Shown: piece after piece, positions 6,053 through 61,080 of the stretch
Numbering within the stretch: the first letter of the stretch is position 1
Layout: each line of letters begins with the position of its first letter
Assembly (NCBI GenBank): GCA_965112735.1
Contig: OZ218956.1
Span: forward strand, 1,116,001-1,180,000
Length of the DNA stretch: 64,000 nt
Direction: 5' to 3'
Origin: Phaeosaccion multiseriatum
Taxonomy: Eukaryota > Protista > Ochrophyta, other classes
Position numbers and translations under genes: made by a program
Notes under the pieces: model-generated
Told to the model about the DNA's origin: nothing
The model's database searches: none
Seen by the model: the letters and a program-made list of their open reading frames with translations, nothing else

Positions 6053-6714
6053 AGCCCTAGAGAGACTCAGAGGAGAGGCTCAGAGATGGAGTCAGGAAGC
6101 AGAGGAGGAAAGGGGGCAGAGCGTCGAATCGCACACTGGCTCCCGCCGCGTTACTCCGGGCATCGCCAAGGACGTGCCCTGCTCCGTGCTTATCGCCGGC
6201 GCCAGCTGGCATGCCTTCTGCTGGGAGCCAGCGTCAGCCGGCGTGCTATCTGTTATCGGGCCCTCGCAGGGCCCGATAGTATGCTATCGAGAATGTGGTC
6301 GACAGCACGTCAGGGGTCGAGCAGGGGGGAACGACGCAGGAGAAGGAGTCGCAGAAGGGAGCCACAGCAGCAGTGCAACACCAATGAATGAGTCGAAGCC
6401 ACCAGACTCGAGGGCTTACTTGTTCCCCTCTCTTCCTGTCTGTGTGTCGCTCATTCGCCATGAGCATCTCCGGTGGCTGGGCAGTTGGCAGTCTTGTGCC
6501 AACTGCCCAGAATATCAGTTTCAGTTTCAGTTTATTGACATCCATGTTTTCCTCCTCTCCCTCTTTGATGGTAGCGATACTTACGCGATATGACGTTGAC
6601 ATGGCGGGGTGGAGACACGTGGCAGCCTTTCTACTGGGAGATGAATGACCTTCGGCCCCAGACCAGACTCGCTCACTCACTCACGCACGCCGGCGGCCAG
6701 AGAGCTGCCCATCC

Positions 6715-17937: not shown

Positions 17938-18975
17938 TCGGCTTCAGACTGGCCTAGAAGCCTAGCTATGCTCTAGGCCGGCGGCCGTTGGCCCCTCTAG
18001 GCCGGCCATTTCTTCTCCCTAGGCCGGCGGTTCTAGGCCTAGGCCTCGACCCTGGACAAGATTATATGATTACTGATTATGACCGGCGCCAGCCGGCCTG
18101 ATTACTGATTATGCGCCAGCCGGGGGCTGATTACTGATTACGGCCGGCGCATAGCTACCGTAATCTTGTCCAGGGTCGATCAGGGAGGGAGGGAGGGAGG
18201 GAGGGAGGGAGGCAGGGAGGGAGGGAGGGAGGGAGGGAGGGAGGGGGAGGCAGGGAGGGAGGGAGGGAGGGAGGCAGGGAGGGAGGGAGGGAGAGAGGGA
18301 GGGAGGGAGGGAGGGAGGGAGGAAGGGAGGGAGGAAGGGAAGGAGGGAAGGAGGGAGGAAGGGAGGGAGGGAGGGAAGGAGGGAGGGAGGGAGGGAGAGA
18401 GAGAGGGAGGCAGGGAGAGAGGGAGGGAGGCAGGCAGGGAGGGAGGGAGGGAGGGAGGGAGGCAGGCAGGCAGGCAGGGAGGGAGGCAGGGAGGGAGGGA
18501 AGGAGGGAGGGTGGGAGGGAAGGAGGGAGGGAGGGAGGGAGGGAGGGAGGGAGGGAGGGAGGGAAGAAGGGAGGGAGGGAGGAAGGGAGGGAGGGAGGAA
18601 GGGAGGAAGGGAGGGAGGGAGGGAGGGAGTCGACCCTGGACAAGACTACCTGACTACTGATTACGGCCGGCGCAGCCGGCCTGATTACTGATTATGACCG
18701 TCGCCAGCCCGCCTGGCGCCTGATTGCTGATTATGGCGCCAGCCCGAGGAAATGGCCGGCGCCAGCCGGCCTGGTTGCTTACAGCCGGTGACCAGCCGGC
18801 CTGATTACTGATTATGCGCCAGCCGGGGGATGATTACTGATTACGGCCGGCGCACACCGTGATCTTGTCCAGCCAGTGCCAGGGGGGCCTAGGGCGGGGG
18901 GGCTGCGCCAAAAATAGGCCTAGGCCGGCCGAATTTCGTCTCTAGGCCTAGGCTTCTAGGCCAGTCTGGAGCCGA
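17938..18975 (+). mobile_element. Complete nested non-autonomous DNA transposon: 28-bp outer TIRs, 6-bp TSD, two inner TIR cassettes around (GGGA)n
   Basis: TCGGCTTCAGACTGGCCTAGAAGCCTAG (17938-17965) pairs with CTAGGCTTCTAGGCCAGTCTGGAGCCGA (18948-18975), one mismatch. TCCTCT flanks both sides (17932-17937 and 18976-18981). Inner cassettes 18046-18179 and 18630-18872 start with TCGACCCTGGACAAG. Confidence 0.88.
18182..18629. repeat. Degenerate (GGGA)n microsatellite, core of the element
   Basis: GGGA/GGAA/GGCA run. Confidence 0.97.
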
Positions 18976-38823: not shown

Positions 38824-39654
38824 ATGGGAAGGGCAGGAGGAGCAAAGGACGAGGCAGGGGACGAGACCTGCGCGATCAATGGTCTCAGTCGAGTGGAGAA
38901 GTGGTGCAATGTGCGAAGGGCACTCATCAGTCGCCTCAGCAGCCTGCTCGATCCTGCCGCGAATGGAGCCTCCAACTCTGGCGAAGAGGGGAGCGATGGA
39001 GAAGCAAAGAGGAGAAGGAGCGAAGGTGACGTCAACCCACCAAGGCTGCAAGGAGCTGTGTTCCGCCACAGGGAGGCCTTGTTGACGCCAGTGCGTCTCC
39101 ACCTTGTGGAGGCGCTCCGCAAAGCGACTATTGAGGCGGTATTGACAGCTTGCCAAGACGCAGATCGTGCTGCTGCTATGGAGGATGCCAGTTCCGCTGC
39201 TGCTGCTGCGGCGGCGGCAGCGGCTGCCGCCAGGGTGGGGCTTGGCAGTGGGTCCAGCGACTCTTCTTCTTGTCGCCACGCTAGCCCTGGCTACGACCAG
39301 GCCTTTATTCACGGTCAAAGTCAGGGCCATCATATCTATCGAAGGTCGTCTCGAGGTTTGGCTGCTGCTGCTGCCGCTGCAGCCGCTGCTAGGGCCAATA
39401 TTCCGGACGAGACGGCCATTCGAAGCCACCGCCTGCTTGTGGAAATCGCATGTTTCGGCATTGCTGACTTGGGAGACAAGGAGGGCGCACGCTTGGAGCG
39501 TATCCTGGGTGTGCAGCTACTCAACAACCCACTCATGTGCAGTGTGAATGTACTTGGCAAGCCCGCAAAGCTGCACGACAAGATGAGACTCCTGGTGCGT
39601 ATACAGGCCGCCACGCGCCCCCAACAAGGAGTTATATAACTCCCTCCCTCTGCT

Positions 39655-39692
<38 letters not shown>

Positions 39693-42600
39693 ACCCAGCC
39701 GATCGACGGGGGCACTGTAAGCCAAGTCCACTGCGCACTGTTGAGGCACTACCTCCGGCACCTCCTCCGAGGATCAGGTACTAGGTGGGCCGCTCCTCGA
39801 GTGTCGGAGCTGTCCGCGGAGGAGAGGGAGCAGCTAGAGGCGCTGGAAGGGATGGCGCTGAGGGGACTAGGAGAGGAGGGGCAGAGGCAACAAGACAGCG
39901 AGAGGGAGCCAGCCCTGCTTGCCGTGGCCAACGTGGTGCTGCTGGTGCTGCGGGTGAAGCGCAAAGCGATTGAGGCCAAGAATAGGATCCAGGAGCGGAA
40001 GCGCGCCAGACGGAAACGGAAGAGGGTACTGAGTGATTGCTGGGAGACGTGGGTGGATGGGGTGCGTCGAGGAAAGCTGTGGAGAATGAGGATAGAGAGG
40101 GAGGAAGAGGAGGCGACAAGGCGGAAGCTACGGGAACAGGAGCAGGCAGGTCTGCGAGAGCTGCAGGAGAGATTGGAGCAAGAAGAGAGGGGCCGGCTTG
40201 CCCTGCTTCAAAGGAAAGAGGAAGAAGCGAGAGTGGCCACAGAAAAGCGAAAGTCCGAGTGGGAGAACCAATTCTTTCGAGAAAAGGCAGAGATAGAACA
40301 CAAGAGGGAGAAGGCGGACAAGCTGCTCGAGGAGGAGGAGAGGAGGCGGAGAGAGGAGCTGAGAGTGTTGCTGGAGCAGGAGGAGCGGGCGGCGAGGGCA
40401 GCGATGGAAGAGCGACTACGGGCCATGCAGGTAGAGGCCGAGGAAGAGCATGCTAAAGCTCTACGTCAACTCCATCGGGCGGATGCTGACGCGGCAGCCC
40501 AGAGGCGACGCGAGAGCCTCAAGGACGAAGCCGCGAGTGTGGTGGCAGCAGCGGCGACAGCAGCGACAGCAGCCTCGGCAGCGGTAGCAATAGCGGCGGC
40601 CAAAGCGAAGGCCGAGCAGAAGAAACTGAAAGAGGCCGAGGAAGCGGAAGAGGCGAGGCGGAGGGAAGCGCTCAAGGCCCGTCTGGAGCAAGAGGAGAGG
40701 GACGCTAGAGAGGGACTGCAGGGTCGTCTGGCCGAGGAGGAGGCGAGAGAGAGAGAGAACAAGAGGAGAGCAGAGCAAGAGGAAGAAGAGCAGAGGCGGA
40801 GGGGACGAAAAGAGGAAGAGGAAGCGGAGAAGGAGAGGAGGAGGGAAGCGCTCCAGGCCCGCCTGGAGCAAGAGGAGAGGGACGCTAGAGAGGGACTGCT
40901 GCATCGTCTGGCCGAGGAGGAGGCGCGCGAGAGAGAGAGCAAGAGGAGAGCAGAGCAAGAGGAAGAAGAGCAGAGGCGGCGGGCTCTGGCCGCGAGGGAA
41001 GAGGAGATGGAGGAGGAGGAGGAGGCGAATAGAGTGCAACGGGAGAGCCTGATTGAGGAGGCCGAGCAAATGGCGGCGGCGGCAATCGCGGTGGCCAAGG
41101 CAGCCGCAATGGCAGCAGAGGAGGAGGAAGAGAGGCGGAAAAGAGAGGTAGAGGAGCAGCTGCTGGCGGAAGAGAGACTGGCGAGGGAGAGAATCGAGGC
41201 AGCCAAGGAGGAAGAGGCAGCGACGAGGAGACGCCGCCAGAGTGTGAGTGAAGAGGCGGATCACATCGCTGCAGCCCTGGCGGCGGAAGAGCAGAGGAGG
41301 AAGGCGGAGATGGAGGCGGAGGAGAGGGCGAGGAGGGAAGAGCTCCAAGCTCGCATCGAACGAGAGGAGGTGGAGCGAAGGCGTGCGATGGAGGAGCGAC
41401 TGGCGGAGGTGGAGCGGGAGGTGCGGGACAAGCGGGAGAGAGAGGAAGCGGAGGAAGCGAGGCGGAAGGAAGCGCTCCAGGCCCGCCTGGAGCAAGAGGA
41501 GAGGGACGCCAGGGAGGGACTGCAGGGTCGTCTGGCCGAGGAGGAGGCGCGCGAGAGAGAGAGCAAGAGGAGAGCAGAGCAAGAGGAAGAAGAGCAGAGG
41601 CGGCGGGCTCTGGCCGCGAGGGAAGAGGAGATGGAGGAGGAGGAGGAGGCGAATAGAGTGCAACGGGAGAGCCTGATTGAGGAGGCCGAGCAAATGGCGG
41701 CGGCGGCAATCGCGGTGGCCAAGGCAGCCGCAATGGCAGCAGAGGAGGAGGAAGAGAGGCGGAAAAGAGAGGTAGAGGAGCAGCTGCTGGCGGAAGAGAG
41801 ACTGGCGAGGGAGAGAATCGAGGCAGCCAAGGAGGAAGAGGCAGCGACGAGGAGACGCCGCCAGAGTGTGAGTGAAGAGGCGGATCACATCGCTGCAGCC
41901 CTGGCGGCGGAAGAGCAGAGGAGGAAGGCGGAGATGGAGGCGGAGGAGGTGGAGCGAAGGCGTGCGATGGAGGAGCGACTGGCGGAGGTGGAGCGGGACG
42001 TGCGGGACAAGCGGGAGAGAGAGGAGGTGGAGGAAACGAGGCAGAGGGAAGCGCTCCAGGCCCGCCTGGAGCAAGAGGAGAGGGACGCTAGGGAGGGACT
42101 GCTGCATCGTCTGGCCGAGGAGGAGGCGCGCGAGAGAGAGAGCAAGAGGAGAGCAGAGCAAGAGGAAGAAGAGCAGAGGCGGCGGGCTCTGGCCGCGAGG
42201 GAAGAGGAGATGGAGGAGGAGGAGGAGGCGAATAGAGTGCAACGGGAGAGCCTGATTGAGGAGGCCGAGCAAATGGCGGCGGCGGCAATCGCGGTGGCCA
42301 AGGCAGCCGCAATGGCAGCAGAGGAGGAGGAAGAAAGGCGGAAAAGAGAGGTAGAGGAGCAGCTGCTGGCGGAAGAGAGACTGGCGAGGGAGAGAATCGA
42401 GGCAGCCAAGGAGGAAGAGGCAGCGACGAGGAGACGCCGCCAGAGTGTGAGTGAAGAGGCGGATCACATCGCTGCGGCCCTGGCGGCGGAAGAGCAGAGG
42501 AGGAAGGCGGAGATGGAGGCGGAGGAGAGGGCGAGGAGGGAAGAGCTCCAAGCTCGCATCGAACGAGAGGAGGTGGAGCGAAGGCGTGCGATGGAGGAGC

Positions 42601-44714
42601 GACTGGCGGAGGTGGAGCGGGACGTGCGGGACAAGCGGGAGAGAGAAGAGGCGGAGGAGGAGAGGCTCCGAGCCCTTGCGCGCGAGGCCCGAGAGAAGGA
42701 GGAGGCGGATAATGACAAGGCTGTGCGGGTGCGGCGGCAGAGCGTGGCAGACGAGGCCGAGCAAATGGCGGCCGCGGTGGCGGCGACGGCGGAGGCAGCG
42801 GCAGCAGCAGCGGCAGCGGCGGCAGAGGAGGAGGCGTGGAGACAGGAGGAGATACGCGAGAGAGAGCTGCAGATGGCGACTACTCTGGCAGAGGTGGAGA
42901 GGAGGCAGGCCGAGGAGGAGGCGGAGAGGCTTGCGCTGCAGGGAGAGGCGCAGCGTCTGTCCGAGCTCAGTCACAAGCTGAACGAGGTGAGTGGTTTGAT
43001 GCACAGCCAGCCCACTGTGGTGGGCGGCCTCTCCAAGGCAGAGCAAGGCACGTGTAGGATGGGTCAAGCAATGAAAGCCCTCTCTTATGCATGCCTCAGA
43101 ACGAGCGACGGATGAGGGAGGACAAGGAGAAGCTGCAAGACAAGGTCTCCTCTGCCCACGCCAAGACGAAAGAGAGGCAAGCGGCCATTCGAGCGGAGCT
43201 GCAGCGCCAGCGGTGCTTCAACGCTTGGCGGAGTCGCACGGACGTCATGCGGAAAGCGAGGCAGCAGGCCGAGCTCATGTTCCTGGCCAGTCGCAGGGAG
43301 CGTCTCTTGACTTACTACGAGGAGTGGGCCATCGCGTCGGGACTGGTGCGTGACTGGCGGAGTCGAAAGAAGAAAGTCGAATAAGAAGCAAAGAACTTAC
43401 TGCCCTTGATTGCTTGCTGCCTTCCCTTCCCACGCAGGTGCACGCCTTGAAGAATCGCTGCCTCCGCCGAGAGAAGGCCCTCCTCAAGAATGTGATGAAG
43501 GCCTGGATCATCTTTACGGAGTACCGGAGGGAGGTGAGAGTGAAGGATACACATACGTGCATGCACACACGCACATGCCCCCTGGCTGGTCGACACTTTT
43601 ATCAACCGCTCTCTCCCCCCGCCCTCTCCCAGAAACGCATCGCAAAGGCTCTCGCCCTGGAGGAGCAAGGCATCAAGGCCGACGTCATGACGGCCTGGGC
43701 GGGCGCCGTGGCGGCCGACAAGTTCTACCGCATGAAACTCCTCATTACCGTCATGATTCACTGGAAGGGGGCCTCGCGTGCCTCCGCTCTGGGCAAGCGG
43801 GTGCGGCAGCAGTGCTTCCGCGGGTGGAGGCTGCGAACGGAGCGCATGCTGGAAGCTCGAGAAGAGGCGGAGCTCAGGGGCAGAGCCAAGGCCAAAGAGC
43901 GCCTCCTCGCAGTGTACGAGGGCTGGGCAATTGCGGCGGGACTGGTAAGGGCGAGTCCTGTTCAATGGAGGAGAGGAGAGTGGCTGGCTGAAGCCGACAG
44001 CTGGCTTGCCCCGCTGCTGCTTGTTGCCTCGGTGGCTGAAGCGCTGCCGCTGCTGCCGTTGTTGCTTGTCTTGCTTTGTGCTTGACTTGCCGTGCCTCCC
44101 TCAGGTGCACGCCTTGAAGAATCGCTGTCTGCGGAAGGAAAAGGCGCTGCTGCAGAACACGTACAGCGCCTGGAGGCTCTTTGCAGAGTACAGACGGGAG
44201 GTGCGTGAGTTGGCCGAGCGAGGCGAGGGCAGGGGTGCGTCGTCTTTACTTCAGCCGGTGCGAACACACACACACACACACATCCTGCTTGGCTGATCAC
44301 GCGAAGCAAGGACGAGAAGTGAGACAGAAACACCAAAGTCAACCCTCCACTGCCCTACTGACCAGCCACCTGCCGCCCGCCCACCGCCCGGTCGGTCGCT
44401 CGCAGAAACATGAAGCCCGGGAGGAGAGACTGCTCAAGGCCGACGTGATGACGGCCTGGGCAGGCGCAGTGGCGGCCGACAAGTTCTACCGCATGAAGCT
44501 GCTCATCACCGTCATGATTCACTGGAAGGGAACCTCGCGCGCCGCATCCGCTACGCGCGAGGTCACAAGAAGACGGAGCGACGAATCAGGACCCACCGCC
44601 ACTGAGCTTGCCCGTGCTGCAAAGTGGGAGGAGGAGGAGGAGGAGGAGGAGGACCAGCGGAGCACACCACAAACCCCCGCCTTGGCCTTGCCGGGCCAAG
44701 CAGCGGCAGGATAG
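38824..44714 (+). CDS. Sfi1-like centrin-binding protein with a long E/R/A-rich helical repeat spacer
   Basis: C-terminal Trp-anchored repeats match the Sfi1 consensus Ax7LLx3(F/L)x2W(K/R): ADKFYRMKLLITVMIHWK occurs twice, plus RCFNAWR, VMKAW, CFRGWR and TYSAWR. The ~1100-aa central exon is EEERRR-rich. Confidence 0.7.
40848..42660 (+). repeat. Three near-identical in-frame coding repeats (start-to-start spacing 624 and 579 bp)
   Basis: GCGCTCCAGGCCCGCCTGGAGCAAGAGGAGAGGGACGC occurs at 40848, 41472 and 42051, with a partial older copy at 40668. Confidence 0.95.
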
Positions 44715-45099: not shown

Positions 45100-45106
45100 T
45101 AGTTGG

Positions 45107-45203
45107 GGGTCCCGCCGGGTCTCGATCCCGGTACCTTCTCAGGTTTCAAAGAATGTGAGTTTCAGCTGTTAATGAGATGCGATTCCACGTTCGCCACGGG
45201 ACC
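45107..45203 (-). tRNA. tRNA-Val(AAC) with a 24-nt canonical intron (45143-45166)
   Basis: Cloverleaf: acceptor GGTCCCG/CGGGACC, D stem GCGA/TCGC, anticodon stem TCTCA/TGAGA with TT-AAC-A|intron|C, and T stem CCGGG/CCCGG. Confidence 0.9.
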
Positions 45204-45785
45204 TTGTACTTGTCTCATATTTTCGACCCGATCTGAATATCCTGATTTTCTCCTCCTATTTTTTCATCGTTTTTTTTTTTTTAGACTTACGTTCTGTGTC
45301 GGCCCCTGACAAGGTTCTGGGTTCCAGGTTCTGGCCGGCGCCAGCCGGCCGGGTTCCAGGTTCTGGCCGGCGCCAGCCGGCCAGGTTCCAGGTTCTGGGG
45401 GAACGCCATGTAATAAGGCAATGATAAAGTGAGCCACCTAGGATGTGGGACAGACCACACACCCCAGACAACCAACAGCAAGGGGTTCGTATCCTATGTT
45501 GAGCGTGTATTAGCTTTCTTTATCAATCTCACTTCCCTATCTATCCTTCTCCTGCGACATGCATGCCGTTCATATGAAGCACGTGTTCCCCAACTGGCGA
45601 CAATCCGGATTCGAACATACCAAACACCTTTTGAGACTCCACAAAAGGCTTCTCTCTCTCCCAGCCTTCTTGTATTACTTCGATTACTTATATGAACACC
45701 AACTGCACTTTACGTTCCTCATGCTACCTAACTTCCCCCCTCATGCCTCTGGCAAAACTCGCTGTACTCTGTTCTCGGCATTCTG

Positions 45786-48365
45786 TTGATGGTCAAAGTA
45801 CAGCACGTGCCGGCGACATGCACAGTTGTCCTGCGAGATGCTCGCCTCAAGGATACCGGCGGAGTGGCAGTAGTAGGCGACTGTGTGTACATTTGCAGCA
45901 GCAGAGACAACAAGTTGTACGTTGTTCACGTCAAGGAGTCATTGACAGGGTCTCACGAGACGCGCGATTTTGACGAGGGCCGGGATGGGATTGACACTGT
46001 GGAAGGTGGGGCGGGTGTGCCAGGGAGGAAGAAGAAAGCCGAGCTCAAGATAGTGCAGACACTGCAGTAAAGTCAAGGTGACGCCCCAGGGAAGGTCGTT
46101 GAGCACTTCATGCCGCTTCGGAGTCCCATTGCGGTGTGTGTAGGCTTGGGCTCGGACAAGGACTACGATCTTTTCGTGTCTCAGCAGCTGCCGGGGCGTA
46201 AAGGGGGGCTCGTTCAGCTCTCCTTTCGAGCGCGCGACCCCACCTCTGCCCTTTGCACTGTGGTCGCCTCGCTTCCCGGAGAGCCGGCAGGTGTGACTGC
46301 TCTTTCGGCTTTTTGTATTGCAGTACTCGTGGATAGGTCCTTGTTCGTGTTGGACAGATCTTCCCGACAAGACGAAGAAAAGGAGGGGAGAGAAGAGCAG
46401 AAGGAGGAAGAGGAGGAGGAGAAGGTAGAGGAGGAGGAGAAGGAGGAGGAGGAGGAGGAGGAGGAGGAGGAGGAGGAGGAGGAGGAGGAGGAGGAGGAGG
46501 AGGAGAAGGAGGAGGAGGAGGAGGAGGAGGCGGAGGGGGGGGGAAGGGGACAGGGGGCGGAGGTGGAGGAGGAGAAGGATTCTGCAGAGACGGTCGAAGC
46601 GCGGAATGAGCATCGCACGAGGAGCAGAGCTGGAGGAGAGTCTAGGGGGGTGAGGGGGGGGGGCGGGAGAGGGTGGAGGGCATCTATTGCTCGCAGTGGA
46701 GAGCGTTGGCGAGGCGCCCTGTGGATTGCATGCAGCACCGACTGAGGTGTCCGAAGATGCGGATGCGAGACACGTCATGTACGTGGTTGATCAAGGCGAC
46801 CACTCCGTCAAGATGTTGTGGCAGAGTGCTGCCACAGAGCAATGGACTGTACGTGTGGTGGCAGGCGGCATCGGCAACGACAAAGCGGGCAAGAGCACTG
46901 GGAGCGGCACGGCCAAAATGGTCGCTCTCTTCAAACCTACCTGGGGCTGCTTCCTTGGTGGGAAAAGTTTCCTGTTCTCAGACAGTGGCACACAGTGTAT
47001 CCGGCTTCTTACGGACATGTACCCTCTAGCGGAGCGCCTTCTTCCAATGCTCCGGCGCTTGGCCGAGGCGTACCAGCTCCTCCCTTCCTGCGCTGTTGAC
47101 GGCGTGGACATGCACAGAAATGCCAAGTCATTGACCGAGTCTGCAGCCAAGATGGCCTCTGTGCACCTCCACGTCGAAAAGCTGGCAGAGGACGCCGCAA
47201 AGCGGACCGGGAAGTCGCTCGCATCCGTTCAGGGGCCCGAGAGCGCCATCTCGCCTTCGCTAAGGAAGAGCATCAAGTGCGCCGTCATCGCCTTCTCGAA
47301 GCTGATGAAGAGGCTGAAGGAGGAGGTGAGTCACAAGTGCCACGACACGACGGAGGGGAAGAGCCCACTGCCTGTCTGCCTCGCTATTTTTTATCTTGCG
47401 CTGACATTTCCCCCATCTCCCCCTCCTCCTATACCGATGCTCCCTTGCTCCACTTTGGGTCTCTCTTGTCCTGCAGGGAGTGCCTGCACGTGTGACCGAC
47501 AAGATTATGGCTAAGGCATTGCTCACCTTAAATGTGGAGACCAGCTTCACGCAGTACCGCAATGGGGGTGGGGGGAACACCAACATTGCGGTACTGCGTG
47601 CTCCAAGTGCTTCGACGGCGACAGATTGTCGGGGTTGAGATGGCGAAGCGATGGAGTGGTGGCAGGGGATATGTCTACAACACGGACAGCAGGTCCAGCG
47701 GCCAGCAAACGTTCCGCGGCCACTACCACCACTCTCTCAATTTCAGCAGGCGTGTCGCTGCCCCCGTCTATACATGAGAAGGAAAGTTCCAGCACGCTCT
47801 CTGTCTCCAGCGGAGCAAGCGACGAGAGAGCAGGAGCTGCGTGTACTTCGTCAGGCGGCTCGAATCATGAGGCCATGATGCGTAACGCGGGTCACAGACA
47901 AGGGAAAGGCCCAAGTTGGTTCTCTTCCCCTGTCAATCGCGTACGACAAGATCGAGAGTCTGGGTGATGACACGTCTGGGTATAAGCCAGGTTCGAGCAG
48001 CTTCAGGGGTGGAGGGGGGGGGCAGAGCAGCACGGGCACCCAGATCGTGCACCAAGAGGGAGATCTGGTCTACGTGAAGGCTGCGAATGGCTCGGGCAAT
48101 GAGCTCTTCTTTGTGGTCCAGCTAAGAGAAGACGTAAAGGAGGCGTACAAAAAGGTCCGCAGAGGAGCTGGAAAGACAGTGAAGATGGGAAAGACAGTAG
48201 AGCCTTCACACCCGGGCGTGCGACATTTTTTCAAGGGCAGCGCAGGTGGGGATGAAGCAAAGCGTGGCTCCGGTGATGTGGTATACAACTACACCCATGA
48301 TGCAAGCGTGAACGTGGAGGCGATTTATGGTGCGTTGACTTCGTTCGGCAACGCGGCCTACCAGT
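45786..48365 (+). pseudogene. DDE-type transposase remnant with an NHL/beta-propeller region (Dada- or P-like)
   Basis: NHL-like blades: GGVAVVGDCVYIC, SPIAVCV, MYVVDQGDHSVKML, VRVVAGG, LFKPTWG and FLFSDSGTQCIRLL. These are followed by QGPES and, after intron 47326-47477, LLTLNVETSFTQYR..TPT..Y (catalytic-Glu-like motif). There is an in-frame TAA at 46068 and frameshifts at G-runs. Confidence 0.6.
46405..46530. repeat. (GAG)n expansion inside the transposase remnant
   Basis: Trinucleotide run. Confidence 0.95.
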
Positions 48366-48617
48366 ACTCACTCACTCACTCACTCACTCACTCACTCACT
48401 CACTCGCTCACTCACTGTCACTTACTCACTCACTCACTCACTCACTCACTCACTCACTCACTCACTCACTCACTCACTCACTCACTCACTCCCTCACTCA
48501 CTCACTCACTCTCTCGCTCACTCACTCACTCACTCACTTACTCACTCACTCACTCACTCACCCACTCACTCACTCACTCCCTCACTCAATCACTCACTCA
48601 CTCACTCCCTCACTCAC
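48366..48617. repeat. (TCAC)n microsatellite at the transposase/ATM junction
   Basis: Tetranucleotide run. Confidence 0.97.
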
Positions 48618-48799
48618 TGACTGTCCGCCGCTGGGTGGGGCAGATCCACTTTCGCTTGTGCCTGTGGCGGGCCCCCACCCCTGTTGCCGAGGCCCGCGTC
48701 TTCCACGCCTTCAAGCTCGCCGTGGAGTGCACAAACGTACACGAGAGCCCGAGGTGAGAGAGAGGAGGGAGGGTGTGGCTGCCCTTTCTGCTTCTGAGT

Positions 48800-49400
48800 C
48801 TCTACCTGTCTTTCTAGACTATCTGTGCATCTGCCCATCCATCTATCCATCTATCTCTACCTGTCTTTCTATCTGTGTATCTACCCATCCATCTGTCCAT
48901 CTATCTCTACCTGTCTTTCTATCTGTGTATCTACCCATCCATCTGTCCATCTATCTCTACCTGTCTTTCTATCTGTGTATCTACCCATCCATCTATCCAT
49001 CTATCCCTACCTGTCTTTCTATCTGTATATCTACCCATCCATCTATCCATCTCTACCTTCTTTCTGTGTATCTACCCATCTATCTATCTCTACCTGTCTT
49101 TCTATCTGTGTATCTGCCCATCCATCTATGCATCCATCTATCTCTACCTGTCTTTCTATCTTTCTATCTATCCATCTTTCTCTCTTTCTTTCTCTCTTTC
49201 TATCTACCCATCCATCTATCCATCTATCCACCTATCTCTACCTGTCTTTCTATCTGTGTATCTGCCCATCTACCCATCTGTCCATCTATCTCTACCTGTC
49301 TTTCTATCTGTATATCTACCCATCCATCCATCCATCCATCTCTACCTGTCTTTCTATCTGTGTATCTACCCATCCATCTACCCATCGTTTCATCTATCTC
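48800..49400. repeat. ~50-bp minisatellite in an intron
   Basis: CTATCTCTACCTGTCTTTCTATCTGTGTATCTACCCATCCATCTGTCCAT repeats at 48851, 48901 and 48951, then degenerates. Confidence 0.95.
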
Positions 49401-52400
49401 TAGTGGCCTGAGAGGGGGCTGACATCAGAGGTTGTGTGTGTCACCTCACAGCTGTTTGGGAGCCGCCGTCAACCTCGTCCTATGGGAGCTTGAGCGCAAA
49501 GTGGACACCGTCGTTAGCCTCATCGTCCGCTATATGGTACGTAAGACTCATACATAGCTTACTTGAGCCCAAGCCCGAGCCGAAAGCAACTCTCCATTGA
49601 CTTACGCTCTCCGTTTACTTCCACCCATTCACCACGCTCTCCATTGTCTTTCGACCCCCCCCCTGCCCTGTCGGAACTGTGGACGCCCTCCCCCCACAAC
49701 AGGCATCTATGCATACGCAAGTGGTGCCCACGTCGTTCTGCCATATGCTGTCCAGCCGCGAGCACTCCCTCACCGCCGAGCGGGGGCTGGGCTTGTGACA
49801 GAGGTGCTGCACTTGCTCGCTGAGGTGCTGCAGGCCTGCTTCGGGGAGGTACGTGGGGGGTGGGGGTCGGGGGCGAGGGGCTACTGCTACTAGTGCTACC
49901 GCTGCTGCTACTGCTGCTGCTGCGGCTGCCGCTACTACTACAACTACTACTGCTACTGCTACTGCTACTACTGCTGCTGCCGCTACTACTACAACTACAA
50001 CTACTACTGCTGCTGCAGCTGCTGCTACTACTATTCATCGTCTCTCTCTGATGAACACACACCTCTTCTGGTCTGGCTGGTCTGTGTGGCTGCTGTACTT
50101 CCCTCTGTCGAGCAGAAGGCCGGATGCACGACCCTGCTACGGAGTGGGGTGGTGAGGCGAATGGTCAATGCACTCGCCCTACTCTTCATCAAGCTTCGGA
50201 GTGTGGGGGGGAAGGGACGCTGGTCGCAGCAGCGGCAAGCACAAAAGAAGAACAAGAGGAGGAGGAGGTCGTGTTGATCCCCTGGCGGAGGAGAAAAGGC
50301 TGCGAGAGGCCATCCTTGAGCCAAGGGAGGTCGTGCCTTGGAGGAAGGAGTGCTTCCAGCTCGCAGCAGAAACGTACCAGGTGAGTCAGACTCGTTGCTC
50401 GCTGGTCTGGTCGTTGGTGATTTTGATTGATTTCGTCTCCCCTCCTCACCCAGCCATGATGAATCAGGCGCTGGAGACGGTGGTGGTGCAGTCCCCTGCT
50501 CTGCTTGAGGTGGACCCTCTCCCCACCCATGGTCCCTCGTCAGGCGCAGCCTCACAGACCGTCAGCTCCGAGCTGTCCGACTGAGTAGGTCCGGCACTGG
50601 TGGTAGTGGTGGTAGTGGATCCAAACCTTGGGGGGGGCTGTGCTGGGAGGAGGGGGAGGAGGAGGGAGCGATGAGCAGCCAAGAAGACAAGCTGCTAAGG
50701 ATTCTCTGCGGGCAGGTGTGTGGATGTGTGTGTGTGAGAGACAGAGGAAGAGAGAGAGTTCGAGCGCTCCACGGAAGTGATGCCCATCCGTCTCACTCTT
50801 CTCGGGCCTTTGTTGTCTTCTTCACTCATGCACAACCTTTGGTCGATCGGTCCCATGACCCTACTAGCTAGCCTGTGTGTCTCACCTCCGGGAGGCCATC
50901 AGCAGCGCAGGCTCGCAGTGGATCGGAGTGCTCGCGGAGCACTTGGTGATACAGTAGTTGGTGATACAGGAGCATCAGCAAAAGGAGCAGCGACTCACAG
51001 AGGAGGAAGAAGGATGTATCTCCCGTGGCAACGACTCCGCAAGGGGTGCGTGGACGAGATCTTATCAGCACTGTGACGGAGTTGTGTCGGACGGGGCAGC
51101 CCAGTGCGGTCTTGAGTGAGGTGAGAGGGGAGGGGAGGAGCGGGGGTAAAGGAGGGGAAGGGAGGGAGAGGGGGAGTGGGAGGCAGAGGAGGGGCCCATT
51201 GTTTGTCACCATCGCGTCGATATGCCTGCACCTAGTTGCTCGAAATCCCAACGCAGCCATCTCTCTCTCTTTGTGTGTGTGTGTGTGTGTGTACCTAGGC
51301 GGGTAAGCTGCTAGGCGAGGTTGGGGGCGTGGATCCCAACTTTGTTCAGGTAAAGGAGCGTTGCGGTAAAGCAGGGGTGGGATTATGTGTGTGTCCTTCT
51401 TAGTATCATGAAACTGAACGCACACTGCGTCGCCCCTTCCTCCCGACTCCAACCCCCCAAGTAGGAGCAGGAGGGAGGAGGGGCAGGATACACGAGGCCC
51501 TCAAGGTGTTGGTAGGGTATCTTCATCATTTCCCTCAAGGTAGGAAGTATATTGACTTGCGGGAATCAACCAAAGAAAGTCATGTGTGTGTGAAGGTAGG
51601 AGGGAGGGCGGGAGAGAGAGAGACAGAGAAAGCCCCCGAGAGTTTTGTGTTGTGTTGGCACTCCCTGCCCTACCGCTCTTGCTTGCTCGCGTGGCTGGCA
51701 CTACTTCACTTCCTTATCGTACTGTCTGTCTTGTTTGTCGTCTGCTCGCCTCAATTCTTCTCTATTCTCTCCGCAGTCCTTGTACACGCTCAAGGCTGTC
51801 TGCACGCGGGTGAGTGGGCCTCGTTTCAGTTTGAGCTTCAGTTCGCTGACCTCGTACTAACTCAACCAAGCAATACTTTTGTACGCTATATCACTGACTG
51901 CCGCCCCTCCGCCGTCCACTGCCATCCCCTGCAGGACACAGAGGAGGTGCCGCTGCGCGCATGTCAAGACGAGTCCCTTCTACAGGTGAGTAGTAAGTCA
52001 ATGGGTACCCCACTACTACCACCACCACTGTAATTGTCTTTTTGTAACCGTCTTTCTGTCACCGACATCCAGTCAGCGCGGTCAGTCCCCCACGGAGGCA
52101 GGGAGGGCCAATGTCCTGAGACAGGTGCAGGACGTGGGCTCCATCCAGTGCCGTCCCCACGCACCACACGGCGGTCACGGTCAGAGTAGGGGAGAGGGGG
52201 AGGGGTCTTCCATGTGCCCTCGGCTGTGGAGCCCTCTGGGCAAGAGCTTCTCGATTTGGGTATATGCCGCCTCACGAGTGCGTGCGGCCCAGCCAGAGAG
52301 CCAGGTACACTACTTGACTTGTTTCTTTTGGTATGTTGTTGTCATCATGTATTTTTTATTTGGTATCCCATCTCTTTCATCCATTCCCTGCCCTTCTCGA

Positions 52401-55400
52401 CTGCGCTGTTGCCTGCTGTATCACCAACTGCTGAGCCACAGAGTCAGGCGCCGCGTGACTGGGCACCGCAAGGGCAGGACGATGTGTGGCAGAGTGTGGT
52501 GAGTGAGTGAGTGAGTGAGTGAGTGTGTGTGCGTGCGGAAGTGTGTGAGTAAACGACAGGCCGAGTTCGCGGCGTGCCTGTTTCCCGCCATTGTGTACAC
52601 CATCCTCTGCGGGGGCAAGAGGGGCGGCGAGTTGTGCTCTCGGCTCGATTCAGGGAGCTGCTTTCTTCTTCGACCGTGCAAGAGAAAGGGTGTACCGCCG
52701 GGGCTAGAGGGGGTTGAGGTTCAGCGAGCAGTGCGCCTCGGTATTGAGACGCTGAACTTCCTTCGGGCGCCGCAACTCAAGGCTTTTGTGTACCAAGCGG
52801 AGAGGACCAAGAATATGAACAACTACCCGCTAGGCTACCAGTATAGAGGTGAGAGGCGGTGGGGGGCGGTGGGGATGGGGTCAGGGAGAGAAGAGAGAGA
52901 CTCCATGCTATCTTTTACAAAAGAGCTTGACAATGCGCCTGCTCTCCTCTCCCCTCCTGTGCTCTCCTCTCCTCTCCTCTCCTCTGCTCTGCTCTCTGCC
53001 CTGCGCTGTATCACCAACCCCCCCCCCCATTGTTATGGACAGACGAGAGCGGGTCCAGCCCGTCTTGCTTCGGCCTCCACCTGCGCCTCTCCTTCCTCGA
53101 TGTGCGCCTTTTGCTCAGCGCTGCTCTATACGGAGGTACAGAGAGAGGTGTATGGGTTGGGGCCTTGGGGGGGGGGGGGGGCTACGGGCCGAGAACAGTT
53201 GGCTTGAGGGACGGGGTGGGACGGTCGAGTGGTATGGCGTTTCGAAGTGATCTACATACAGAGACTCACACACGGCCAGCGATTTCATTCTTTCTACACC
53301 AGAGATAAAAAACGACAGAGAGAGAGACATCGCGTGTGAGTGTGTGTGAGAGAGAGGGCGCGTGCGTGTTTGAGGGAGAGCGTGTGTGCGTGTGTGTGAG
53401 AGAGAGAGATAGATATAGAGGTACTAAACCTCGTTTGTTTGCCCATCCCCTCGTGTCTCGGCGCCGTTGACCCTTGACCTCTCCGCTTGGCTTTGGGGAC
53501 TGCCTGACTGTATGCTGAACCACCAACCGCCCTACCACATGTCATGCGTGCGGCTCTACGCTGCTCGGCCTGCTGTGTGTCACCAACTGCTCCAGTTCTG
53601 GTGTGAGAACAAGGCGACTTCGGGCCGTTCAGGAGGAGAAAAGGGCAGCAGCAGCAGCAGCAGCAGGAGAATCGGCAGTAAGGGCCTACTCCTTTCGCCC
53701 AACCAGCCCACTGCAAGTGAGTGGTGTGTGGCTCCAAGAGAAGCTTGCTTTTTGGCTTTTCTCATCAACTGCTACTGCAATTGCTGCTTGCTACTTGCTG
53801 CTGCCCGCCTGCTCCTGCTGCTCGCAATGTAGGAGGGTTGCTTGTTCGCGTGGTCTTGTGAGTGTGTAGTGCATCAGCAAAGCACGCTCCCTCGCCGCTC
53901 TTCTCTCCCCCTCTCTTCTCTTCAAAGGACGGCGCAAAGCCGAGGAGAGGCGCCGCGTACAGCAGCTCCTCATGCACGTCTTCTCCAGGTGAGTGAGGGG
54001 ATGGCAGTGGATGGGGCGGGGTGAGCAAGAAGGGGCAAGCAGGTCGATGTGGTCTTGCTAACCCTCACTGCTCACTGAAGAGTCTTACCGCCATATGCCT
54101 TCTATCCTGATGACCCCCCCCCCCACCCCAAATGGCACGCCTCTTGCAACACCACAGCATTGACGGAGTAACCTCAGGTCAGCCAATCTTACTTCTTACT
54201 CCGTTTCTTTCGTCCCTTCTTTCCAGCGCCTGCTTTCTTTCGAGTCCGTCACAGCCAGCACTACTCACACGGACTCTCTTTTTCTCTTCCCTCTCTCGCC
54301 TTCACCTTCCCGTCCCTTCTCTTATCCTCTCTTCTCTTCTCTTCCCTTCCCATCCCTTCCCTTCATCTTGCAATCCCTTCTCTTCTGTTCCCTTCCCTTC
54401 CCTCCCCTTCCCTCTTCAGTGGTGGGCTGCACGGACCTTGCCATGAATCTCTCTGCTCAGACGCACGAGGCGGACTGGCAACAGGCTCTGCCCTCCTACG
54501 ACGCCGCCCTCCAGAGGCACCACGCACACTCAAACTCCATCTCACAACAGGCCGTTTCAGTGCACCTGCAGACAGGGGTGGCGTCGTCCTTACGGCGCCT
54601 GGGCATGTTACACGTGTTGGATTGTTACCTTAAGGGGGTAAGGCGCGATGTGGGGAGCGGGGCCGGAGCTGGGGGGTGCCAATCTTCAAGGGTATCTGAG
54701 GATGCTTAGGGGAGAACAGTAGGAGGGGAGAGGAGGAGGGGGCAATGGAGAGGGAGATTGAAAGGGCGGGAGAGGAGAGGAGTAGGGGCCTGAAGAGGGA
54801 GAGGGAGACATGGGGCGGTTGCAGGTCTCGCCTCTTTAGTGACAGAGAGCACTTCGAAACCCCCGGGACTCGCAGGTGGTGATGACACCTCACCCCTTAC
54901 CCGCTCCCATCGCACCTTCGAGTGGGACGCAGCCCTCCCCTCTGGCGTATCACCAACTGGTGCCCCTGCCGCTGCCGGTGCTGCCGCTTCGCAAGAGGAG
55001 GTCATGCCCCCGCCTTCGTCAACAGCTGTATCACCTTTTGGAGCCGCAGCACTTGGTAGTACAGCAGTTGGTGATACGGCAACCCTCAGACTCACTCGGA
55101 CGCCCATTGACTTACAGGAATCAACCGAAGAATGACGTATGTGTGTGTGCGTGTGTGTGAGGGGGGGGGTGGTTGACTGGTGGAGAGGCGGGTAGATATT
55201 GCAGGCAGAACTCATGTGGTTGTGTGCTTGTGCGTGATGGATTTCTGTCTCCCTCTCGGGGAGGGGCAATGACGGCGGGGCGGCCCTTTGTGGTCCATCG
55301 TTCATGGTACAGATGGCTTGTCACCACACGACGTCTGAACTGACATTCGCTCATGCTTCTCCTCTCCCTCTTCTTCTGTGCTGGGCGATGTCTTGACCTC

Positions 55401-55944
55401 TACCCCTCTCATATTCCTTCCTTGTCGTACCACCAAATGCCGCAGATGTGCTCTCCACCATGAGCTCGGTGCTCGGACACGAGGGCGGCTCCGCGCTCTA
55501 TCCCTGCCTGGCGCAGGTCAGTCAGTCAGTCAGTCAGCCAGTCAGTCAGTCAGTGAGGCAGTCGGTCAGTCAGTTAGTCACTCAGTCAGGGAGTGCAGAG
55601 CTCTGAGCCTCTCGCTCTTTTCCCCCTCCCTTCTGTCGGATGGGTGCTGTTGCTGCTGTATCACCAGCTGCTGCTGCTGCTGCTTCCCCCACCCCCCCAT
55701 ATTCAGCTGCAGAGGGTTTCAGAGCGCTAAGCTCGCAGCAGCGGCCGCAGAGGGGAGGAGAGACAGGGGTGGCTTCTTCGGCGGCCTCGGAGAGGAGCAG
55801 CGGCTGCAGCATGAGACATTCGCTCGCTTGACGGACAGGTCTGTGCTCGGTACACAGCAGCAGTTGGTGATACAGAGACAGCAGTTGGAAGGCTAGCGCT
55901 GCCCGCGAAAATGGTGTCTCTGTGTGTGCGTGTGTGTGTGTGCG

Positions 55945-55981
<37 letters not shown>

Positions 55982-57970
55982 CGCGAGTATGTAAGTGTGC
56001 GTGTGTGGGTCGTCCCTCACCCCTCTCCGCCTCCTTTGCACCTGGCCACACACACGACTCACCCCTCACCACTCCGTCACTCACTCACTCACCCACTAAC
56101 CACTCTCATTCATTCACTTACTCACTCACTCACTCATCACTATCCCACTCACTCACTCACTCACACACCCCGACAGATGGCGAGGGCGCCTAACCTCCAT
56201 CGAGGAGCACTACGACACCCTGGAGCCCGTGTTGGCGATACGCGAGGCCCTGCTCCGACAACTTCACAGACAGCAGAGCCCTCGCGTCACATCCCCGGCC
56301 CTGACTCTGGCCCTGACCCTGGCCTGGCTCGGACTGTGACCCTGACCCTGACCCTGACCCCAACCCGTCGCCCTGACCCTAGCCCGTCGCCCCTGAACCC
56401 GGAAACAACCCCCCGTCTCGAACACCCCCCCCGACACACACACCCAAAAGGCCCTGACCCGCTCCGAGTCCACGCAGCAGATTCTCGACAAGTTCCTGCG
56501 GTCAGTCAGAAGAAGTGTCACATGCGCTACATTCTCCCCATCTTTTGACAATCGTTCATCATTCATCGAGTATCTTCTCATTCATATACTTGTTCAGTCG
56601 AAGTGCCTACTGAAAGTGAACCTTCTCTGTCCCGACTTGTGAATGACTTCCTGTCACGATGGTCATGCACAACCCACAGGCGGTGGCGTCGGAGAAGTAC
56701 ATGTCGCACTTGACGCTCGCGAGTTACGCAGCCAAACAGCACCTCCTCATGAGGGGACGCATGAACACGCAGGCCTGGAAACAGGCGTTGTAGCTCACCA
56801 CGAGGAAGAAAGGTGAGGGGAGGGAGGGGAGGCTGGGGAGGGGAGGGGAGAGGAGGGCGGGAGGGACGGAGGGACGGAGGGGAGGAAGGGGGGGATGGGG
56901 TGGGAGGATACGGAGCAATGTGGCATGACACCCTTCGCCCGTTGTCTGTTGTAGTCCAAAGAAGTCCATCTCTTTGTTTGGTCTGTTCATTCCTTCGTTG
57001 TCCCCTTTTGGTGGAACTCACCTCTCCCTCTCTCCCGTTCTCTATCCATCTCTCTATCTACCTCCTCCTCCGCCTCCTCCTCCTCCTCGATGCACTCTTC
57101 GATGAAGCTGAGGCCAAGGTGTGCGCTGACCGCATGGAGGAAAAGAGGAGGGAGGTTCAAGCCCTGCAGACAGGAGGAGGAGGAGGAGGAGGAGAAGGGA
57201 CGGGGGGCGGGGCGGGAGGAGGGGGCGGTGCAGGCACCAGCGGCAGTGCCAGCGGCAGCAGTAGGCAGAAGAAAGCGGCTCGGGGGGGGGGGGGAGGAAG
57301 GAGGATGTAAGCTTGGAGTGCAAGAAGCTTCAGCACATGATCACCAGGCTCGAAGGGTTAGTCAGCAGACGGGAGGGGAGGGGAGGGGAGGAAGGGAGGG
57401 AGGGGAGGGAAGTGAGGGAGGGAGGGAGGGAGGGAGGGAGGGAGGGAGGGAGGGAGGGAGGGAGGGAGGGAGGGAGGGAGGGAGGGGAGGGAGGGGAGGG
57501 AAGGAAGGGAGGGAGGGTGGGAGGGAGTGAGGGATGTTGTTTGTTGTTGTTGTTGGTCTTTGCCCTTTCACGGGGAGAAGAGGGAAGCAGGAGGGCCACA
57601 TTTCTTCTCTGTTTGTTGCGGTCGAGTGAGGTCGTGAGCTCTTCATGGAGAGAGAGAGAGCTTCATCCCCATCTCCCCCCATCCACTGCCATCCCCCCTC
57701 TCCCCCAGGCACCAGCGCGTGCTGCGTCGCGAGATCGCCATCGACTCGAACGAACAAGACCTTGTGCAGGCATCTGAGCAGAGCTGCCTGTTGGAGGCCC
57801 TCAAGCACTTCCGCCACGCCCTCAGGTAGGGCCGGGTGGGGGGGGATGGCAGTGGATGAAGGGGTGGTGGGGTGGATGCGTATGGAGGTTCTGTCTCGTG
57901 CTGGACTGTGCTGGGCTGCGCTGCGTTGGCTTTCTTCCATTTTGCTGCTAGTGTCTCTTGTCTTGTCTCG

Positions 57971-58007
<37 letters not shown>

Positions 58008-59029
58008 TTGTGTGTGTCTCGGTTTTGTTGGCACGGCTCCCATCCGCCTTCTCACCATTGGTCACACCCACCCACAAACACGCACACGCACGCACGCACA
58101 CACATACGCTCGTGCTCGTCCTCCGGCCGTTTCAGTCTCGGCGTCGTGCTCGTCCTCCGGCCGTGTCAGTCTCGGTGGTGAGTCTGTGGTTCAACAACTA
58201 TGAGAGGGACAGCGCCAATCAGGTATGTATGTGAGAGGCAGGACGACGGGAGGAACAGATCGACATATGTGCGTACGGCACACACGCAATCTGCCCTGAC
58301 CTGTGTGCGTCTGCCCCTGCCCCGGTACCCCTCTCCCCCTCCCCCCCTGCAGGAGATGCGTAAGATCGTGGCGGACGTCCCCTCCTGGAAGTTCATCCCC
58401 CTCACCAATCAGGTCAGTGCCAGTGTGCCGTGTGTGTGCCGTTTGTGTGCCGTGCGGATGCGTGTACTAAACGATGTGGGTGCGTGGTGCGCTGTGGTGT
58501 GTCTGGCCGTGTGGTGTGTAGGTGACGAGTCGGCTGGACAGCAACTCCATGTGCAGCTTGGGCCCGGGCAAGGGCAGGGACCTCTTCCAGACCACGCTAA
58601 GGTCCCTCATCCTCTTAGGCTGTGCAAGGAGCACCCCCACCACGCACTGCTTAAGGTGAGTGACAGCAGGGTAGTGTAGGGCAGTTGGTGATACAGGGCA
58701 GGGCAGGGTAGAGGCATATAGGTCAGTCGGAAGGGAAGAGGGAAGAGGAGGAGGGGGGGGGAGGAGGAGGGAGAGAGAGAGAGAGGAGTAGCGTGGTCTT
58801 GCCTGCCTTATCAGGCCCTTGCCCTTCCTCGCCCGCCCTCTATGCTTTGCCTTGCCTTGCCTTGCCCTCTCAGCTCATGGCATTGGCCAACGGGGAGGTG
58901 CGTGCCGAAGTGTCCGCCTTCAACACCTTCCGCGTCAACGTGTCCGGGGGGCGCATCGCTGGGGCCAGGCAGGCAAGTGGCTTGGGGCAAGCAGGGGGTG
59001 GATTGTCAGTGAGTAGCTTGTCAGTCGTG

Positions 59030-59109
59030 CGTCTGTCTGTCTGTCTGTTTGTCTTTCTGTCTCTCTCTTTCTGTCTCTGTCTCTCTGTTTGTTTGTTTTG
59101 TCTGTTTGC

Positions 59110-59149
<40 letters not shown>

Positions 59150-59202
59150 CTGTCTGTTTGTCTTTCTGTCTCTCTCTTTCTGTCTCTGTCTCTCTGTTTG
59201 TT

Positions 59203-59241
<39 letters not shown>

Positions 59242-59512
59242 CTGTCTGTCCGTCTGTCTGTCTGTGTGTCTCTGTGTCGGGGTGTCTGTCTTGGGGTTTC
59301 TCCCTTTCACCATCCGCCGCCGCTTGTCTCGGTGCTAAGCCCCTCCCCTCCCTTCCCTCCCCTCCCTTCCCCTCCCCTCCTCTCCCCTTCCCTCCCTTCC
59401 CCTCCCCTCCCCTCCCTTCCCTCCCCTCCCTTCCTCTCCCCTTCCCTCCCTTCCCTCCCCTCCGTTCCCCCTCTTCCCTCTCCCCTTCCCTCCCTTCCCC
59501 TCCCCTCCCCTC
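59030..59512. repeat. (TCTG)n followed by CCCTC/CCCTT low-complexity intron repeats
   Basis: Simple repeats between ATM exons. Confidence 0.9.
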
Positions 59513-61080
59513 CCATTGCCTACAGGTGCTGGAGGAGCTCAAGAAGTCCACCCTCCCTCTTGATTCTCAACCTCGGGAAGCTTGTGCACGCCTACACTGT
59601 CCTTGCCGAGAGGAGCGTGAAGGATCTTGTGGAGAAAAAGAGGGTCAAGAATGTCGGCTTTGGAGAGAGGGTCTAGGTGCGTTACGTTACATTAGTAAGT
59701 TTAGTGGTCACTTTGGCTTCCCCCATTGACTTACTGCACACCTCCCCTCTCAGCTCTGTCGACCTCCTGCACATCTGATGTCCTCCCTTCTCCCTCTCCC
59801 TCCTCTTAAGATCGACTGGAGGCCAGAGCGGCACCTCCTCCTCCTCCAATCTCGAGCACGATACCGATCCCTCCCACGCGCCGTGTGTCGTGGAGGTCTG
59901 GTGAAGGTCATCTCACACTCTACTCGGCTCCGAAGCTCGGCACCAGTACTGCGGCAGCAGCGTCAACCCGGGCCGGCCCCCCGGACTTCAAAGATAATCT
60001 TTCAATAGATACGTATCTTGTTGCCCTTCTTAGCTAAGGCTTGCCCCCCTGGCCTTGTCCTCTTGCCCCTCATCGACCAGGGCTATGACTCGATTGGACG
60101 TCCGTTACCTCGCCCCCCCCCCGGAGCATGGCTATGGGTGGCCTTCGCTTTTTCCATGTACGCTCCAAACGCCTACGCCACATCTTTCCACCACCATGCT
60201 ATTGGACAGCCGTGGAGCTTGCTCATCTTCTGAGCCTGCAATACGTCTGCTGCATTGTGCTTACGCTTTCTGCACTGGTCGCCTCTTGTGTGCCGCCAGA
60301 GGGCAGAATTGGTGCGGGGGCCACTGCATGCTCGACACGCCCTTCGCCAGCACGCTACCGCGTGGGAAAGACATCGCCGTCACATTCCCCTTTGTCTTTC
60401 GACAATGCCTTCCTTCTCCCCTCAAGAGTTTCTTCTTGGTCATTCTGTGTTCCGTGTTGTGCAATCCCAGAGCGAGGACCTATTGGCGGCATTTGAAGAA
60501 CAATCTGGCGTTGTTAGTGAAGTGGAGGATGACATGGAGGGGAATTAGATCGAAAGTCGGTCGATTTAGAGCCAACGGGAGCGCGGGGGTATTATATTTG
60601 ATACGTGCCTGCTTTTGGATGACGTTGACGAGGACCCAGTTGCTGCTGCGGGGGCGAGAAGGGCGGAAGTGGTAGCAACGATCGATATGCTTTGCTTTGC
60701 TTTCCCCACTGCATTCCCTCCAGGATCTCCAGCGACTGTTTGACTTGTAAAGACGGCCCTGGCTGCTGGGATGAGCGAGTCATAGACTAGAGGCATCCTT
60801 CTCTGCTGTTGCTTGCCTGCTCCTCAGCAGGCTTCCTTTACAGCAAGTCGTCTCATCTTTTTTCCTTCCGGGTCGGTTGCAGAAAAAGCAGAAAATTTCC
60901 AATTTGAGATTTTCACCCCTCTGCCCCCTTTCCCCCCTTTTGGTCACTTTCAAACCTCCCTTTCCAACTTACCGCACCGCGTCAAAGCATACCCAGGTCA
61001 GTCCGCGATTGCAAGCAGGGTTCCACTTGGCTTGGCACTTGCTTGTGTCGACCCGCCCCCTCCTCACGCGCTATGCATTC

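Follow-up and report, generated by a model that had tools for sequence, protein, structure and literature searches.

We found that positions 45299 to 48364 of the window (the whole 64,000-nucleotide stretch of Phaeosaccion multiseriatum DNA that was analysed, to which all coordinates without a locus name refer) probably hold the decayed, non-autonomous remains of a TIR transposon of the cut-and-paste kind, which belongs to a P-like lineage and landed beside a tRNA gene. This lineage is apparently undescribed. The initial annotation had proposed a Dada-like lineage with TIRs, and part of that picture stands, namely TIRs, TCG ends, related MITEs and the remnant of a DDE transposase that contains an NHL propeller. 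The assignment to Dada fell, both on its motifs and on the best fold match, which is to P. The region is organised as follows:

45104 to 45203, − strand: tRNA-Val(AAC) gene of the host, interrupted by a 24-nt intron at 37/38 and lying outside the element (ARAGORN -i; cloverleaf arms in the fold)
45204 to 45298: 95-bp AT-rich spacer (33% GC), upstream flank of the tRNA gene and site of the head-to-head insertion (sequence, position)
45299 to 45314, + strand: left terminus of the element, a TIR-type end (TCGGCCCCTGACAAGG) that matches MITE ends and the transposase-flanking ends of the homologous loci L004, L010, L011 and L013
45319 to 45398, + strand: subterminal direct repeats, 2.5 x 32 bp with the core GCCGGCGCCAGCCGGCC, common to the inner MITEs and the left end of L011 (TRF)
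45401 to 45786: segment of 47% GC without transposase homology, which spans the internal deletion (HMM, shuffle-tested alignment, hhalign)
45787 to 46403, + strand: NHL propeller blades of the transposase remnant, with an in-frame stop at 46068 (tblastn and HMM, i-E 4e-27)
46696 to 47325, + strand: last propeller blades, helical insertion domain and QGPE motif (47230 to 47241) in an open frame (phmmer, best E 8e-34; HMM, i-E 8e-58; Atlas NHL features)
47326 to 47478, + strand: spliceosomal intron (GTGAGT...CTGCAG), shared in position with the homolog L011 (comparison with L011)
47479 to 48364, + strand: catalytic-Glu exon (TLNVETSF, Glu codon 47537 to 47539) and C-terminal region (alignment, HMM)
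48366 to 48622: (ACTC)n microsatellite where the element breaks off and its right end is lost (TRF, HMM)

The element end, TCGGCCCCTGACAAG, is present in the sequence at 45299, and both this end and its subterminal repeats resemble the MITE cassettes of the window, as had been noticed initially. The alignment with the inner MITE end at 621 (− strand) scores 85 (shuffle mean 20, maximum 33), those with the inner ends at 18046 and 18631 score 68 and 67 (shuffle maxima 32 and 39), and blastn reports 75% over 89 nt for the inner MITE ends (E 6e-9). The 17-mer GCCGGCGCCAGCCGGCC occurs six times, against 0.01 expected. Judged by their sequences, the 45299 end and the inner MITE ends are related families and not copies of one another, because their identity is only about 70-75%. 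Two MITE features of the window are relevant here:

370 to 621: inner TCGACCCTGGACAA MITE cassette with terminus and repeat type as at 45299, without TSD (alignment)
17938 to 18975: outer MITE with TCGGCTYCAGAC TIRs and the 6-bp TSD TCCTCT, which encloses the inner cassettes 18046 to 18179 and 18630 to 18872 (alignment)

The description of the cassettes at 370 to 621 and 18046 to 18872 as MITEs with 6-bp TSDs had to be corrected, as no TSD was found on these inner cassettes, and TCCTCT around the outer MITE is the only TSD pair among the TCG-type ends of the window. Past the first 12 nt, the TIR of this outer MITE aligns with the 45299 end no better than chance. The stretch from 199 to 947 repeats, in truncated and inverted form, the right half (18180 to 18975) of the nested MITE at 17938 to 18975, to which it is 93% complementary over 527 nt. 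Two unpaired TCG-type ends, at 6309 to 6320 (− strand) and 6652 to 6663 (+ strand), face away from each other; one of them carries the GCCGGCGCCAGC motif about 110 bp inside, and both are possibly decayed element ends.

Position 45299 is a transposon end. It aligns with the ends of the inner MITEs, and on metagenome contigs homologous transposase genes are flanked by related ends that start TCG. The homolog L004 is a complete element of 10.7 kb with perfect 23-bp TIRs starting TCGGCCCCGGAC, the left end of L011 and the right end of L010 start TCGACCCCTGACCAGG and are 14/16 identical to 45299, and L013 ends in TCGGCCCCAGAC. No TSD was found around L004, whose metagenome flanks may be chimeric. 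Among the 19 homolog loci, TCGRCYYYNGAC, a motif partly derived from these same loci, has five matches, all of them inward from element ends, with 0.75 expected. A scan of metagenomes with a 22-nt terminus pattern gave 12 matches, none of which was a transposon end or linked to the transposase.

The 385 bp without homology between the end and the ORF could be taken to mean that the 45299 end is a separate MITE fragment, which by chance lies upstream of an unrelated transposase remnant. This is very unlikely in view of L011, one of the two closest homolog loci, in which a 14/16-identical end and the subterminal repeat (score 37 against the window repeats, shuffle maximum 28) stand in the same orientation before the same truncated transposase. 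L011 is itself internally deleted. In this locus from another genome (L011:56-2781), the left end is followed by the DxxH region within about 290 bp, which makes it an independent internally deleted copy, and its decay is of the same kind as that in the window. A partner (right) end for 45299 is absent from the remaining 18.7 kb of the window, and with the right end missing the window contains no TSD of this element.

The ORF at 45787 to 48364 represents the 3' half of a transposase with two stops (46068 and 47876) and three frameshifts. A GAG/Glu-rich tract at 46381 to 46579 follows the first NHL part, one frameshift lies before 46696, and the catalytic-Glu exon contains the other two, near 47600 and 47765, as well as the second stop. 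The NHL blades, the QGPE motif and the LLTLNVETSF stretch recognised initially were all borne out by colinear homologs. The window protein was searched exon by exon: phmmer with the 187-aa piece 46765 to 47325 matched 35 proteins (best E 8e-34), most of them colinear with the window, and the 20 that were looked up are all unnamed or 'hypothetical'. Three stretches of the window, 45774 to 46403, 46696 to 47331 and 47438 to 48382, are colinear with long homologs (tblastn, HMM), and the Glu and Phe of the TLNVETSF motif are nearly invariant in their alignment. Pfam returned nothing for seven window pieces, and the homologous-protein search with family alignments gave only one or two matches.

Towards the 5' side, similarity to L011 at the DNA level starts near 45790 and family homology at about 45787 (HMM); no match to the family DxxH region was found between 45400 and 45774 by HMM, shuffle-tested alignment or hhalign. 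The DMHAVH near 45556, which had been interpreted as a weak DxxH-like remnant, is accordingly not homologous to that motif (hhalign probability 0.1%, E 0.52; HMM and shuffle test also negative). At the 3' side, transposase homology extends to about 48364 and does not reach the PHD finger known from relatives. In the window copy, D1, the Cys cluster, D2 and DxxH are gone, and the propeller, QGPE and catalytic Glu are still present. It cannot encode an active enzyme, nor can it move or be excised as a unit, because only one end is present.

In the intact relatives, D1 and D2 are separated by a Cys cluster, the helical insertion domain between DxxH and Glu houses a six-bladed NHL propeller, and the protein often ends in a C-terminal PHD finger. 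The intronless homolog P0009 shows this order as D226, Cys cluster, D411, D431xxH434, propeller, helices and E963. The RNase H fold with a propeller insertion, for which structure prediction had been suggested as a check, was found in the homolog models. AlphaFold places a six-bladed NHL propeller in the middle of P0009, with Z 30.7 and an rmsd of 2.3 Å to TRIM71. NHL-repeat proteins such as TRIM71, NHLRC2, SOQ1 and PknD likewise have a six-bladed propeller (Z 29-31), but they are not mobile, are without a DDE core and match only model residues of about 340-670. A non-mobile NHL protein was rejected as an identity of the ORF, as the homologs carry a DDE core and TIRs.

Because propeller matches dominated the fold searches with the long model, the N-terminal half of P0009 was folded alone (mean pLDDT 71, on 16 sequences), and its predicted strands put D1, D2 and DxxH at the positions of an RNase H fold. 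With this N-terminal core, Foldseek retrieved the Drosophila P transposase structures 6p5a (E 1.1e-4) and 6pe2 (E 3.4e-4) as its only matches below E 0.001, the next match having E 0.4. VIA also ranked P transposase first, over 194 residues with an rmsd of 11.3 and a Z of 6.4 that integrase cores equalled, and aligned the helices after DxxH, in a domain interrupted by the NHL propeller, to P residues up to 423. The structural match to P, which comes from a homolog model, is modest (TM about 0.2, rmsd 11-16 Å, Z 6.4). ESM Atlas gave no usable match for the catalytic half, Pfam searches showed no P family, and PDB sequence searches remained blank. The models thus show that the homologs have an RNase H DDE fold and point, with modest strength, to P as the nearest solved relative. 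The motifs DEMxL/DGM, SDxxG, DxxHxxKxxRN and LxVExxF also resemble what we take to be the P pattern.

The P superfamily, which includes the Drosophila P element, Galileo, 1360 and THAP9, has been described (PMC7776569, PMC3698922). Like its members, the lineage found here combines an RNase H DDE core, with DxxH after D2 in the homologs and only the Glu kept in the window copy, with a large insertion that separates beta5 from the catalytic Glu. It also shares TIRs with subterminal repeats, a P trait seen in L004, in the ends of L010 and L011 and in the window repeats, as well as internally deleted copies and MITEs. In contrast to P, the insertion domain contains an NHL propeller, a Cys cluster lies between D1 and D2, a PHD finger is found at the C-terminus, and elements carry a second gene and TCG ends. 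The related MITE has a 6-bp TSD, whereas TSDs in described P families measure 7-9 bp (PMC3698922). A THAP domain was not found by Pfam in P0009, P0014 or the N-terminal exons of L001 and L004, whose predicted gene starts may be incomplete. The lineage works like a P element, yet we do not file it as a member of the P superfamily, because no THAP domain was found and because of the propeller in the insertion domain, the TCG ends and the 6 bp of the single TSD seen.

The TCG ends, the THAP search without a match and the 6-bp TSD on a MITE, together with the lack of a sequence-level match to any P model and a weak global structural fit, could instead indicate an independent, unclassified superfamily within the MuDR/P/hAT/Kolobok/Dada (C/DxxH) group, with no special affinity to P. 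We regard this as unlikely, as P transposase outranks ISCth4 (IS256) by over three orders of magnitude in Foldseek and also comes ahead of Transib in VIA, and the motif series named above resembles the presumed P pattern. From Kolobok, which has a TTAA-type 4-bp TSD and RR ends, the lineage differs in its ends starting TCG and in TCCTCT as the sole TSD seen.

Dada transposons are without TIRs, insert inside snRNA, tRNA and 5S genes and create a 6-7-bp TSD (PMC3706591, PMC8869645); their motifs are DSTKK (D1), RLDxxH (DxxH) and CxRG[ST]xxxE (E) (Dataset S1 of PMC3706591). The lineage resembles them in its DDE core with DxxH and, in this copy, in the adjoining tRNA gene, and the 6 bp of the TSD on the outer MITE would fit the Dada range. 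A Dada lineage with TIRs and with insertion sites next to tRNAs is nevertheless scarcely credible: none of the three motifs occurs in the window or in any of 40 long hits, among which are some plain NHL proteins, whereas DxxHxxK is present in 20 of the 40. Dada was tested by motif because no Dada structure turned up as a competitor in the fold searches. In further contrast to Dada, relatives such as L004 have perfect TIRs and no tRNA, and the tRNA gene in the window is intact, 95 bp away from the insertion.

By comparison with P and related DDE enzymes (PMC7776569), the active enzyme of the P-like lineage would bind the subterminal repeats and cut at the TCG ends, and insertion would occur with a 6-7-bp stagger. 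The same enzyme could cross-mobilise TCG-ended MITEs that have the same end and repeat. The lineage is a likely driver of the many TCG-ended MITEs in this genome. Other DDE enzymes also use the insertion domain for additional modules: P binds GTP there, and Hermes, Tn5 and RAG1 carry inserts of their own (PMC7776569). In the literature and in family libraries we found no transposase with a whole NHL propeller in this domain plus a PHD finger, and our searches returned no paper in which a transposase and an NHL propeller are combined. RAG1/RAG2 also joins a DDE enzyme to a six-bladed propeller and to a PHD finger, with a propeller of the kelch type on the separate RAG2 chain; the likeness to the NHL propeller inside the transposase core described here is an analogy and implies no homology. 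The propeller and PHD finger may be protein- or chromatin-binding modules, and their presence suggests a transposase that reads chromatin or a host protein for target choice.

The copy in the window would have landed in the AT-rich upstream flank of the tRNA gene, most likely without tRNA-specific targeting, an open flank of this kind being a site that may favour insertion. Its 5' interior, from D1 to DxxH, and its right end would then have been lost, while stops and frameshifts gathered. Being dead, this copy contributes little more than the link between a further end type and the transposase.

That the element begins 95 bp upstream of an intact tRNA-Val, as initially stated, was verified with ARAGORN -i, and this gene, with fully paired stems and a T-run just downstream, is the only tRNA in the window when introns are allowed. 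The initial annotation had further considered insertion beside rather than inside a tRNA as a targeting mode, for which there is only this one copy and no support in the homolog loci. Ty1/Ty3 and the Dictyostelium TRE5 elements are steered to sites upstream of Pol III genes, and a subfamily of the P-like lineage could likewise be steered about 95 bp upstream of such genes, perhaps via its NHL propeller or PHD finger. The head-to-head insertion upstream of an intact tRNA and the candidate tethering modules in the protein are in line with this idea. It is quite unlikely all the same, as it concerns a single case, none of the other nine TCG-type ends in the window is near a tRNA, and no tRNA gene was found in the 19 homolog loci, where only five element ends with short flanks are visible. 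At 8-10 such ends per 64 kb, chance alone would place an end within 100 bp of about 1-2% of tRNA genes, and thus one such case in the genome is expected. The adjacency to the tRNA is therefore probably incidental, without tRNA-specific targeting.

A more far-reaching idea would join steering to separate rank: a superfamily-level group defined by TCG ends, a 6-7-bp TSD, an NHL propeller in the DDE core and a PHD finger, in which at least the 45299 subfamily uses propeller or PHD finger to insert just upstream of tRNA genes. This is highly improbable; if true, it would represent Pol III gene tethering by a TIR DNA transposon.

Second genes are located inside three of the homologous elements, all on the − strand (L004:1399-2130, L006:1408-2391 and L008:4865-5362). 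The L004 and L006 copies match each other by blastp (E 4e-6), and searches in Pfam and PDB gave no match for these genes. Inspected by eye, this divergent gene of L004, L006 and L008 looks Ulp1/SENP-like in its His-Asp-Gln-Cys pattern.

Downstream of the element, pieces of the exons at 48644 to 59700 remained blank in three PDB searches and in Pfam searches with single pieces; their motifs CSALLYTE, VPSWKFIPL and HPHHAL recall what we take to be the FAT region of ATM. On the other side, a long repetitive coiled-coil-like gene with 180-bp tandem units (39537 to 44700) stops just before the tRNA. The tRNA-Val(AAC) itself has an atypical T-loop, ATCGAGA, with A at position 54. Default ARAGORN and Rfam searches of the window missed this tRNA because of its intron, and tRNA counts for this genome may consequently be low.
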